In this document: in pieces, positions 3,101 through 62,622 of the stretch
Layout of the letters: every line of letters begins with the position of its first letter
Numbering within the stretch: the first letter of the stretch is position 1
Source: Paragordius varius
Taxonomy: Eukaryota; Animalia; Nematomorpha
Reading direction: 5' to 3'
Length of the DNA: 64,000 nucleotides
Assembly: GCA_964247055.1 (NCBI GenBank)
Contig: OZ176050.1
Location: 5,084,001-5,148,000 of the forward strand
Notes under the pieces: generated by a model
Databases searched by the model: none
Told to the model about the DNA's origin: nothing
What the model saw: only the letters and a program-made list of their open reading frames with translations
Translations under genes and position numbers: made by a program

Positions 3101-4520
3101 CAGTATTATTTTAATTTAAAACAAAATTTTATTTATTTTAAAAATATTTAAAAATAAAGGTAATTTTTAATCTTAAAACACATAAATTATTTGAGGGTGA
3201 ATTTGAGTTGTTTAAGAATGAATTTGAATAAGGGTGAATTTGAATTGTTTAATGGATAATTTAAATCGTAAATGGGATCTCTTATGTAAAAAAGTATTTT
3301 AAACATAATATGTATATATCAATATTTATAGTATGGGGATACAACGCACACGTTGATTGAACGCAAACATTACCATGGACCTTTTTTGCCTGGCTATAAA
3401 GAGCCAATTTTTATACCGCCGAATTTGAAACTCTTGTAAAATATAAATCTTAACCTTACTTTTAAATATAACTTTTGTTTTTTTATATTAATTGTTAATA
3501 TATAGACCAAGTACAAACTTAGAGTTCATAGATCATGTTGTAGGCAATCAGCCTGATCAAATGATGGTTCCAGCTGCTGATTGGTAAAATTATATAGTGT
3601 TTATAAAATATGCGTTATAATTTGTTTAATATATTTATAATTGTAGAAAATTATTTCAATCTTTCTTATTCAATTAAGCTAAATCATATTTTAAAGTATA
3701 CGGGCAAAGCCGGCAGTTTTTATTGATTAAATACATAAAAACTAGTATCAGTTTTATATTAATTATGTATATTGTTAATATTCAATCGAATATAAGGTAT
3801 GAGAAAGTATTACAATTTCATCGATTTTGGTCGGTGGATGACAAGCAGATACATACACAGTATTCGGCTCTACGTTCCATAGTTATGGCTAATTATGAAG
3901 AAAGCATAAAAATGCCAATAAATGAACCAGCTCAAGGCTTACGCAAAAGCCAAATACAAGTTTTTAAAAATTTAAAGATTCACAATTTATTTTCAATCAA
4001 TTATTTTCTTTTATATAGGAGTATGTCGATTATTATAGCAGTGCTGGTGTTCAACATATAGCTCTCAATACAAATAATATTATAGATTCGGTAAAACATA
4101 TTATTGTTGACGTTCCATAGGTTATAGCCTTACAAAACAGAGGTTTAGAATTTCTCAAAGTTCCTGATGTATATTATGAACATTTGAGGGAAAAATTAAA
4201 AAATTCACGCACGGTTATACAAGAAGATTTAGAAACGGTATTTTTTTTACAACCATGAATAATTACCTTTTAATATTCAAATCATCATTAATATTAAAAT
4301 ATAAATTTCTGTAAATTAGCTCAAGAAATTGAAAATTTTAATCGATTATGATGAAAACGGATATTTGCTCCAAATATTTACGAAATGTGTCCAGGATCGA
4401 CCGACTTTATTCTTAGAAATAATTCAAAGACGTAATCACAACGGTTTTGGAGCTGGAAATTTTAAAGCCTTATTTGAGGCCATTGAAGCAGACCAAGAGG
4501 CTCGGGGCAATTTATATTAA
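146..4520 (+). CDS. HPD: 4-hydroxyphenylpyruvate dioxygenase (first exon lies upstream of the window)
   Basis: Eleven GT-AG exons: 146-208, 1368-1472, 1564-1609, 1686-1768, 2093-2182, 3332-3435, 3506-3583, 3797-3959, 4019-4090, 4121-4237, 4320-4520. They splice in frame to HPD motifs: [98 protein letters not shown]. Confidence 0.97.
2981..3266. mobile_element. Foldback/MITE-like element in an HPD intron
   Basis: The arm at 2981-3037 is an imperfect reverse complement of ~3175-3231 (gggtgaatttga(a/g)ttgtt units), and one unit is tandemly repeated at 3232-3266. The spacer is AT-rich and non-coding. Confidence 0.6.
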
Positions 4521-4679
4521 TCAATGCAAATTTATTTTTCAAAAATTATTGGACTATATGACGCACACATATAAAATATTTTTATACCCCATTTTATATT
4601 TATTTTTAATTATTTAAATAAATTATTTTAGAGTAAAGATCCCACAAATATAACACTTCACGGCCCTTTCATTATACCC

Positions 4680-59000: not shown

Positions 59001-62000
59001 ATGCTTATATAATATATTTGGCATTTTATTACTTTGAAATTACTCCTGTCCGCCCAGAATCTATATTTCTAATAGACTTGGTATTTAATTAGCTCTTAAC
59101 TTGATACATTATTATATTATCTAGTCAGGCATGGATTGAATATTTATACATACTCACGTTTCGATATTATTCAAAACAAAATATATTTTTCCTTGTATAT
59201 CATTGCAATTATTGGGAAAAAAAGTTTTTGTTTATAAAGTAATATTTTACCAAAAAACATGTCCACAATGACATTTAACAGGCCTCGTGTCAATGTATTG
59301 CACCCTAATAGCATATTGACAATCTGGCCATGGACACCATCTCATTAATCTATTGCACTACATAAGACACAAAGGTGAAAATATAATCGAAAAAATGGAT
59401 GAAAATATATATTAAAAGATAAAATCCAATATAATTATCACACAGATGATATTTATACAATAACCTTTTTGATAAAAAACACAACATTTATAAATAAATT
59501 AACTCAGTTTGAAAGATCAACCGCGAGAAGTTGATTTGATGTATTTTAAACCATTATAAGGAACCAAAAACAATAAATAAATAAAAATATTTATACATTT
59601 TTAAATTTATATGGGATGAACTTAAATTAATAATATAATAGTTTTAAGAAAAAAGTCCATCAACGGTTATAAAGTGGATGTTTATAGGAATACACTGGTA
59701 AAGGTAAATAAAAAATTCTAAAGACAGAACGTAAAGACAAAAAGACATTATTTTTTAGCCATCTTTTTTAAAACCCAGATTATTTCTGCATAATAATAAT
59801 TAAATTTGTGAGATATAATATCAGGTATATTACCAATTTACATCGCTCTTCCCTATTTTGTAAAGCAAAAAGACAAATATTTAAAAATCAAGGTTTATAA
59901 ATAAGGTTGAATTTTTAAAAATATTAATAATTCAATATTTACTGTAAAAGTAAAATTAAAAAAGTTTACCTCCACAAAACTGTTAGTAATGAGATGCTGA
60001 TATTTGTATCGAACTTGAGGATTTTTGACCAAGTGCCTTTATAATAATTATAATCAAAATATCTAATACAATAAACAACCATATTACTGGTTATATAGGT
60101 CTTTTAAATATGGATAAATAATTATATATGTGTATAAGAAACTATGTTTTCTTTGCTAAAATTTGAAGACCCATAAAACCAATAATATGATACTGTTTAC
60201 TATAAGCAAAATAATAATACTTTATTATCAGTTTTCATTATTAATATTTTGTTGTAATTACAATTTATTGCATAATAAAATATATTACATGACAGTTCCG
60301 TCATCCACGAGGGTATCACATTTGTGAGCTGCACAGGATATGGTCTAAAAATATTATATAACGCAAAATTATTGAATAAAAATAAAAATTAATATGAATG
60401 TCTATTACAATAAAAATGAACTAATAATTAAATAGTAAATGCAAAAAAGGCATGCATGAGAAAACATTAAAACACAAATAAATTGATTCATCAAAATTTG
60501 ATATTTTTATTTGTTCTCATAATTTGATGCAAACTAAAAAATATATGGGTAAAAATTATTACCAGGCCCATCCCTTCATGCACAATTTTGGTAGATAGGT
60601 ATTCTGACCAACACGAAATGCAAAACTTATGACCACAGTCCAATCCTGTCATTTGCTATACATATATATTATATTAGAAAAAATATAAAAATAAAGTATT
60701 TAAAAATATCTTTACTGAGTAAAATATATTAATAAAAAAATGTTTTGCCTATGAAAAGAATCGTCATGTTTTTTGTAAATCATATTATAGTTTTATAAAA
60801 GCTCAAATCCCCACATCGATATGCAAATAAACAAATTGTTATCAACAAATTTTGAATTTTGCTAGGAGTTTTAACTATAAATTACTGTTTCGTGTTGATA
60901 ATGTATGAATAAATCAATTTATGCGATAATTGATCATAATATTAATATATGATATCCTTGTTTGATATATTGTGGGGTAAAATTACAGAAATAAATAACA
61001 AATAATCAAAAGCATCAATGTAACAATGGTAAATAACTCCAAAAAGTGGTAATCTCAAGAATGTTTTTTCTATATTTTCAAAAAATAAATAAAAAATGAG
61101 TATTGTAAAAAAGTTTAGACCAGTTATACTCAAACCGCGCCTGAATAATATTTTTTGATGTCATATAAATATTAATACAAAATTGAGTTCGATCGATATT
61201 TATTTATTTTTGAGTATTTAAAAAGTTCCGTTTGATTCGGTATTTCCAATTAAGAATTTTATTTTATAAAAAGAATTTCCCCTTTTTCACTGAAGCTCTT
61301 GATTAGGTTTTGATCATACGCATCTTATTAAAGAATTCATCGATCATAATGATTCCAGTTTAGGCGAGAATTTTAATGGAAATCGCAAAAAATATTAGAT
61401 ATTTGGCAAAATATGCCAAAAAATACTGTAATATAAAATAGCCTGAAATTTCACTTATTGTTTTGTCTCAACTTACTTTGAGGCGGCATGTCAATAAAAT
61501 ATGTTAAAGGACATAAACAAGTGACGTTCGATTAATCTATTATGATAATTAGATAATCGAAAAAATAATGATTATAATAGCTCTAATCAGTAGAAGTTAA
61601 TATAAAATCATGTGTTTAAACCACAAAAAATTTGGTATACTGATTTATTTTATAAGCATCTGGATATGAAGCTCTGCAATGTTTGTCGATATTATAATCA
61701 TTTTAGTCAAAATTTGGTCAGTACCACTGGTTTAAACCGTTATTAATTACTGCTAAAAATAAATAATTAGTTTTAGATGGCTCCCATAATGTAATTTTTG
61801 CACGGTAATTTGTGATAAAAAATAGGAAAAATATCTGTTGTTTGAAAATCATCATTGGTAAATTTATATGATATATTACAAATTTGAATAATTTTAAATG
61901 TGTTATTTATTAACATAAAAAACATTACAAAAAAACTCATGTAATTATCGGCCATCATAAAAAATTTACTGGAAACAATTGAAATATAAGAATTACAATG

Positions 62001-62622
62001 TTTAAAATCTTCAAATGACCTTTCAACTTTAATAATGTATTCGTTTAAAAATACGTAGAAAGATGAAACAATTAAAACCTTTTTTGGGATTGATAATAAA
62101 CAAATCTCACAAAATGCACTTTGCGGCTCATAGGGTTGATTGGAATATTGGGTTTTAATTGCATATTTCTAAAAGAATGTTATGGATATTTAATGTAGGT
62201 AATGGTACATAAAACTCTAACTTACATTTTTATGCTGATTTGGATTAGATATATGCGCCTCTAAGAACAATTTATCTGGATTACCATCATAATACCTATA
62301 AAATTATATGATATATAAGGTAAACCTTTCCAATAACTTTTCTTTATCCCATTTAAAGTGATGTAAAAGTAAGCGTGTAACTGTTGGAGGTAACTTAAAT
62401 TAATTAAAAAACAACCTGGAAGACAGTATTTACATCTTTTATGATCTCTACCATATATTGTACTACTCGGTCTGGACTTAATACCTCATATGAAAAATCA
62501 TCTTCATAAAGATTTGTTAGTAAATTAGCCGGTTTAGTTTGGTGTATGGCTTCCATTGGAATGTCAAGGGCTTCCTCCTCCGATAGCCCATCTTCCGATT
62601 CATACATATCGTCAATATTCAT
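56054..62622 (-). CDS. ARIH1: Ariadne-1 RBR E3 ubiquitin ligase
   Basis: Fourteen exons: 62416-62622, 62326-62393, 62226-62295, 62079-62168, ~60563-60655, ~60288-60345, ~59970-60037, ~59261-59367, ~58831-58947, ~58044-58232, ~57533-57617, ~57227-57406, ~56783-56895, 56054-~56136. Acidic N-terminus, [16 protein letters not shown]1 ([14 protein letters not shown]), IBR (WCPWPDC), RING2 [19 protein letters not shown], Ariadne domain, [10 protein letters not shown]. Confidence 0.97.
61121..61729. mobile_element. hAT/Charlie-like non-autonomous element in an ARIH1 intron
   Basis: Ends cagttatactc / gtaccactg; flanks gtttagac / gtttaaac match at 7/8. Confidence 0.45.

Follow-up and report, generated by a model that had tools for sequence, protein, structure and literature searches.

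Probable shrinkage of ancestral introns to 21-30 nt, with crowding near gene starts, in a genomic window of the hairworm Paragordius varius

In a survey of 51 animal genomes published in 2026, introns shorter than 30 nt were found in two lineages only, the myxobolids (Henneguya, Thelohanellus, and Myxobolus) and Dicyema japonicum, with a median length of 22-27 bp, and the question of how they are recognized was left open (PMC13644364). The original prediction on the DNA studied here named ciliates, nucleomorphs, and dicyemids as the main holders of introns in the low-20-nt range, a list that omits the myxobolid myxozoans (PMC13644364). In addition, myxobolids also carry introns longer than 100 bp (PMC13644364), and the coexistence of tiny and longer introns in one genome is not new in itself. 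In the ciliate Stentor coeruleus, the standard spliceosome excises introns of 15-16 nt, for which altered branching factors have been proposed (PMC9505925). In tapeworms and Gyrodactylus, short introns cluster in two size classes, one around 36 bp and the other around 73 bp, and the shorter class lies toward the 3′ ends of genes (PMC5036155). Furthermore, a set of short human introns with truncated pyrimidine tracts is reported to depend on RBM17/SPF45 and to follow a separate recognition route (bioRxiv 10.1101/2022.12.30.522300). Two classes of donor sites have been described, one of them linked to U5 loop 1 (PMC9803359). Meanwhile, the cap-binding complex helps U1 at cap-proximal donors, and the donors of first introns are weaker in Drosophila (PMC4889658).

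The main text of the animal survey does not mention Nematomorpha (PMC13644364). A literature search pairing Nematomorpha with short introns or the spliceosome, with most subscription journals outside its reach, returned nothing relevant, and the preprint on the Gordionus genome never mentions introns. Here, we analyzed a window of 64,000 nt from the hairworm Paragordius varius. The tiny introns in this window resemble those of myxobolids and Dicyema in several respects: they are GT-AG introns below 30 nt at conserved positions, the pyrimidine tract is weak or absent, the donor is reduced to about GTa, longer introns coexist with them, and the hosts are parasitic animals. However, those two lineages have reduced genomes with medians of 22-27 bp, whereas this repeat-rich window has 12 tiny introns among 67, an empty range at 31-56 nt, and crowding at gene starts. 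Thus a median below 30 bp, the mark of myxobolid- or dicyemid-type shrinkage, was not found in this one window, where introns of up to 30 nt make up 12 of the 67 modeled. The tiny introns here work like the myxobolid and dicyemid ones, without genome-wide shrinkage, and they look like a third animal origin of introns below 30 nt, as a separate promoter-proximal class.

The other systems are less close. Tapeworms and Gyrodactylus are parasitic worms with two classes of short introns and positional preferences, as here, but both of their peaks exceed 30 nt and their shorter class leans to the opposite end of the gene (PMC5036155). Stentor differs in that all of its introns are tiny, with no long class alongside, and in not being an animal. 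In Schistosoma, short introns have been reported to be biased to the 5′ side. The human introns dependent on RBM17/SPF45 are longer than those described here; the likeness is that a separate route for short introns is proposed here too.

Gene models were built by hand for HPD, GFER, SFT2, a TSP1/LamG gene (TSP), ATG16 (in two parts), an arylsulfatase (ARSB), and ARIH1. Homology searches were done exon by exon, and exons were joined only locally, for frame checks and for the LamG comparison. Fourteen segments in six genes (HPD, GFER, SFT2, TSP1/LamG, ATG16, and ARIH1) had been claimed as ultra-short GT-AG introns. On inspection of the sequence, all 14 begin with GT and end with AG on the strand of their gene, with coordinates and lengths correct; the window has a G+C content of 27.6%, and the probability that two given positions carry GT and AG by chance is about 0.0016. 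Twelve of the 14 are very likely genuine tiny introns of 21-30 nt at the DNA level, and for the other two, both in TSP (16409-16437 and 16498-16526), a single 70-nt intron is the better model. The claim that tiny introns stand beside kilobase introns in one animal was borne out at the DNA level by these 12 and by the longest modeled intron of 2,056 nt. All 14 segments had also been claimed to be necessary for the reading frame; retention of any of the 11 non-TSP segments gives an early stop. An in-frame stop lies inside each of the six segments that are made up of whole triplets (joint chance 0.07), which is weak evidence taken alone. After intron removal, the frames of HPD, GFER, SFT2, TSP, and ARIH1 stay open to their ends, and intact frames span 148-507 codons in GFER, SFT2, HPD, and ARIH1. 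Removal restores a conserved protein by homologue mapping in nine of the 12 cases and by frame only in three. The nine (HPD, GFER, five in SFT2, and two in ARIH1) are strong candidates, in which the flanking exons meet at adjacent residues of the homologue. The remaining three (two in ATG16 and TSP 9607-9631) are probable, judged by frame, low G+C, and flanking sequence. An Rfam search of the whole window gave no match.

The HPD intron (4091-4120, forward strand, 30 nt, phase 0) contains an in-frame stop, and its exons abut in human HPD: exon 4019-4090 corresponds to human residues 254-277 and the following exon to 278-316. It is the sole tiny intron distant from a gene start, lying at least 4 kb into the gene and 400 bp upstream of the stop codon. 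In GFER (Erv1/ALR), the intron at 8547-8567 (forward strand, 21 nt, phase 2) is placed by Pfam and insect homologues. The two exons match positions 1-48 and 51-93 of Pfam Evr1_Alr, with exactly two residues between, and the offset across the junction is 0 in all five insect homologues. The single wasp gene examined (Venturia) has no intron at this position. On the reverse strand, ARIH1 has intron 1 at 62394-62415 (22 nt, phase 0), between human residues 125 and 126, and intron 2 at 62296-62325 (30 nt, phase 2, with an in-frame stop inside), where a split codon at 148 lies between human residues 147 and 149. Its exons match human residues 95-125, 126-147, and 149 onward. Presumably, the exon sizes of HPD and ARIH1 agree with the human ones.

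SFT2 (reverse strand) has five tiny introns in series, and their positions could be compared with introns of other animals. Gene structures were fetched from the annelid Capitella, a dragonet fish, and a hemichordate, and the comparison of positions used Capitella and the fish. Intron 1 (9264-9291, 28 nt, phase 0) corresponds to introns of 2,392 nt in Capitella and 507 nt in the fish; it is placed by exon 2, which is conserved and 87 nt long; exon 1 itself has no alignment. Intron 2 (9153-9176, 24 nt, phase 0) stands at the same codon as introns of 61 and 1,325 nt, respectively. The counterparts of intron 3 (8970-8990, 21 nt, phase 0) have 57 and 151 nt, those of intron 4 (8904-8933, 30 nt, phase 0) 55 and 530 nt, and those of intron 5 (8793-8814, 22 nt, phase 2) 57 and 2,048 nt. 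The junctions follow profile codons 22, 51, 106, 118, and 147+2, and codon and phase are common to the Capitella and fish introns (55-2,392 nt) in five of five cases. Since the positions match annelid and fish introns, the SFT2 introns appear to be old and shrunken rather than new insertions. Searches for GFER and SFT2 orthologues in other hairworms returned none.

Both ATG16 introns are probable. Intron 1 (25184-25208, forward strand, 25 nt, phase 2) is supported by the frame and by an inner G+C of 0.10, and no homologue match spans its junction. Intron 2 (25300-25321, forward strand, 22 nt, phase 0) is supported by the frame and by the homology of the downstream exon 3, which matches positions 156-200 of Pfam ATG16 and also human ATG16L1. 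Exons 1 and 2 match nothing in Pfam, and against PDB exon 2 yielded coiled-coil matches of chance quality only; 10% of intron DNA would yield a stop-free exon of 30 codons by chance.

The original prediction placed three tiny introns in the TSP1/LamG gene on its own gene model, and only the first is retained here. This probable intron (9607-9631, forward strand, 25 nt, phase 0, inner G+C 0.05) is required for a switch of frame, and a deeply sequenced second DNA sample (X5) has an extra T, a 1-nt insertion, at 9622. The two 29-nt segments are doubtful, and a single intron at 16409-16478 (forward strand, 70 nt), which keeps the frame, is preferred. With one intron, the alignment to the second LamG-like domain of the gene scores slightly better (59 vs. 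54), and a weak Pfam LamG match continues into what had been claimed as the third intron (15.3 bits vs. 13.5). Both margins are small, and we consider the single 70-nt intron fairly likely. Structure prediction for the disputed LamG exon from its sequence alone was uninformative (pLDDT 41).

Seven segments in the region 8100-9750 were compared with two further DNA samples (X3 and X5), which come from differing samples and studies. All seven are present as DNA, with no joints, in both. Thus, the seven segments are not assembly errors, because two further DNA samples carry them, and for this region the suspicion of such errors is largely refuted. The samples differ inside tiny introns at 8564, 8917, 8973, 9157, and 9622, and no difference was seen in the GT or AG of any of the seven in X3 or X5. 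In the coding sequences of GFER and SFT2, there were four synonymous differences, one replacement, and no indel. Two runs taken to be probably RNA (X6 and X8) gave nothing on this stretch at 82% similarity, and no RNA run containing it was found. An excess of polymorphism in tiny introns over exons was not robust (p 0.04-0.28, depending on the inclusion or exclusion of the variable TSP exons).

The empty range of 31-56 nt and the confinement to gene starts are the most informative features, and neither was part of the original prediction. The 67 modeled introns (median 173 nt) include 12 of 21-30 nt, none of 31-56 nt, and 55 of 57-2,056 nt. At the density seen between 57 and 100 nt, about 7.7 introns would be expected in the gap, and the probability of finding none is about 0.0005. 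Within 600 bp of the ATG, a cut-off picked after inspection of the data, 11 of 16 introns are tiny, and beyond it 1 of 51 (p about 4e-8). In ARIH1, ATG16, and TSP, the tiny introns are the first one or two of the gene, and the five of SFT2 reach 555 bp from the ATG. A test on rank within genes gave p = 0.003 with the HPD exception included.

The splice signals were then compared between the 12 tiny introns and the 55 others, with p values uncorrected across several tests. On this small set, G at +5 is found in 0 of 12 tiny introns vs. 17 of 55 others (p 0.03), and donors with G at −1 and no G at +5 (−1G/+5H) in 9 of 12 vs. 21 of 55 (p 0.03). The reported lack of a pyrimidine tract is reduced to a weak contrast (pyrimidine fraction 0.53 in tiny introns vs. 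0.61 in others, p 0.05). A (c/t)taa(c/t) element before the AG, which had also been reported, occurs in 4 of 12 tiny introns vs. 4.1 by chance and was not sustained; neither YTAAY nor four related branch-point patterns exceeded shuffled sequences in either size class. As to intron type, the GT..AG ends, the collinear restoration of proteins, and the SFT2 positions and phases common to other animals all agree with U2-type introns. The U12 type was considered and rejected: it needs an RTATCCTT donor and a strong TCCTTAAC branch site, and the closest donor, GTATCATAA, departs from +6 onward.

We consider it likely, from the positions and signals in the DNA, that ancestral U2-type introns shrank to 21-30 nt in a hairworm lineage and now form a second size class beside one that starts from about 57-60 nt. 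We infer that the major spliceosome cuts the tiny introns, because snRNA-complete spliceosomes handle introns of 15-27 nt in Stentor and myxobolids (PMC9505925, PMC13644364). An unusual route of splice-site definition for them is plausible. Specifically, the major spliceosome might remove them through a compact intron-definition route, a mechanism that, taken on its own, seems almost evenly balanced, leaning slightly to the doubtful side. U1 and U2 would hardly fit side by side on 21-30 nt. Recognition could depend on the exonic half of the donor, through contacts with U1 and U5 loop 1 and with G at −1 in place of G at +5, and the branch A may be drawn from an A/U-rich stretch with no fixed motif. 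The aid might be present only early in the transcript, in the form of the cap-binding complex or the early elongating polymerase. Introns of 31-56 nt would then exceed what the compact route can take and fall short of what the ordinary one needs, and would be selected against. The combination of an exon-side donor and cap-proximal help is more speculative. Taken together, one major spliceosome would have two modes separated by length, an ordinary one at 57 nt and above and a cap- or promoter-assisted one at 21-30 nt, with a forbidden range between; this would be a third independent animal origin of introns below 30 nt and the first tied to transcript position. We put this full reading forward only tentatively.

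The HPD intron and the five SFT2 introns in series argue against a strict cap requirement, and the distance reached in SFT2 exceeds the cap effect of about 250 nt suggested for Drosophila (PMC4889658). The same two observations favor a serious rival, which we hold to be possible to a similarly tentative degree: the introns are real, the spliceosome handles 21-30 nt anywhere in a gene, and the gap reflects two length optima. The 5′ bias would then arise by mutation, with deletion or recombination more frequent close to promoters, or by selection for short 5′ regions. The two short-intron classes of tapeworms (36 and 73 bp) and their positional preferences also fit this rival (PMC5036155). However, gradual deletion should leave intermediates, which are absent at 31-56 nt among all 67 introns, and the donors of the tiny class differ.

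It is improbable, though less so than the explanations that follow, that the segments, like the inefficiently spliced short introns of microsporidia, are poorly removed and serve a regulatory role or stay in the transcript, with retention leading to nonsense-mediated decay. The early stop that follows from retention of any non-TSP segment is in line with this, and so is the median splicing efficiency of about 25% for very short microsporidian introns (cited in PMC13644364). However, SFT2 requires five excisions in each short transcript, so that low efficiency would leave little protein, and four of the five differences between samples in SFT2 and GFER are synonymous, as in working genes. Removal by a non-spliceosomal mechanism, ribosomal bypass, or decay of the genes could be considered, as removal is deduced from DNA and the lengths lie under the usual animal minimum; this is very unlikely in view of the invariant GT..AG, the positions common to long spliceosomal introns, the mixed phases and lengths, and the frames kept intact in four genes. 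Finally, chance GT..AG pairs picked to rescue frames in A/T-rich DNA, which is probably what occurred at TSP 16409-16526, or assembly errors are extremely unlikely as a general explanation, with seven segments found in two further DNA samples and nine fixed by homologues.

If the two size classes are confirmed, a third lineage with tiny and ordinary introns in the same genes, together with the gap and the 5′ bias, would provide an internal control for studies of minimum intron length. In addition, gene finders and aligners with a minimum intron length of 30-50 nt would disrupt conserved genes of this window at their 5′ ends, and counts of gene loss for the species could be inflated as a result.

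The window also holds an EGR-type zinc-finger gene (21516-22313, forward strand) whose three fingers are closest to those of Gordionus sp. (Nematomorpha), with 65 of 85 residues shared vs. at most 58 of 85 in other matches. Seven residues that are rare (below 5%) among 95 other EGR-type matches are common to the two hairworms, and at most three are shared with any other. The identity to Gordionus is 72-76% in this single-gene comparison, as for a relative rather than the same species, and a myxozoan or dicyemid source of the DNA is unlikely on this result. No neighboring genes are called at the EGR locus of Gordionus, and no exon of the window matched within 10 kb of it. The Gordionus gene has one intron, of 153 nt, and the G+C content of Gordionus (26.9%) is close to the 27.6% of the window.

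Among the acceptors of the window's 55 ordinary introns, AAG is common (11 of 55) and CAG is rare (5 of 55), and the pyrimidine tracts are weak even in the long introns. In the arylsulfatase-like gene (45250-50830, forward strand), the modelled part, which lacks the last exons because these were not located, contains ten introns of 71-952 nt. The first of them is 398 nt long, and none of the ten is tiny.

In the middle of ATG16 (25483-28683, forward strand), the third intron has two candidate ends. It may end at 25518, giving an intron of 36 nt that is followed by a stop about 26 codons on, or at 25611, giving an intron of 129 nt. 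If it is the 36-nt form, this intron would fall within the otherwise empty size range of 31-56 nt. In addition, a retroelement-like fragment lies at 27292-27767 within the same stretch.

The EGR-type gene of the window was modelled with one coding exon of 265 codons, whereas its counterpart in the hairworm Gordionus has a 153-nt intron (L004:10440-10592). The interval 36775-39256 contains disrupted reading frames of reverse-transcriptase and GIY-YIG-like type, together with a partial copy in inverted orientation. By eye, these frames resemble a Penelope element; a Pfam search of them gave no matches. No Penelope elements are reported in the preprint on the Gordionus genome.

GFER, SFT2, and the start of the TSP1/LamG gene lie at 8266-9406. 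GFER and SFT2 are arranged tail to tail, and their stop codons (8730 and 8747) are separated by 16 bp. Thus, their 3′ UTRs probably overlap. Meanwhile, SFT2 and the TSP1/LamG gene are arranged head to head, with 37 bp between their putative start codons (9369 and 9406).

The TSP1/LamG gene (9406-20562, forward strand) was modelled by hand as a single frame of 1,568 codons in 20 exons. The model translation opens with a signal-like sequence, continues through TSP1 repeats and a pair of LamG-like domains, and ends in a hydrophobic segment followed by a long tail. In X5, a deeply sequenced DNA run from another sample than the assembly, 10 sites differ in exons 1-2, and the majority of them change the amino acid. 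This pattern of differences contrasts with that in GFER and SFT2.
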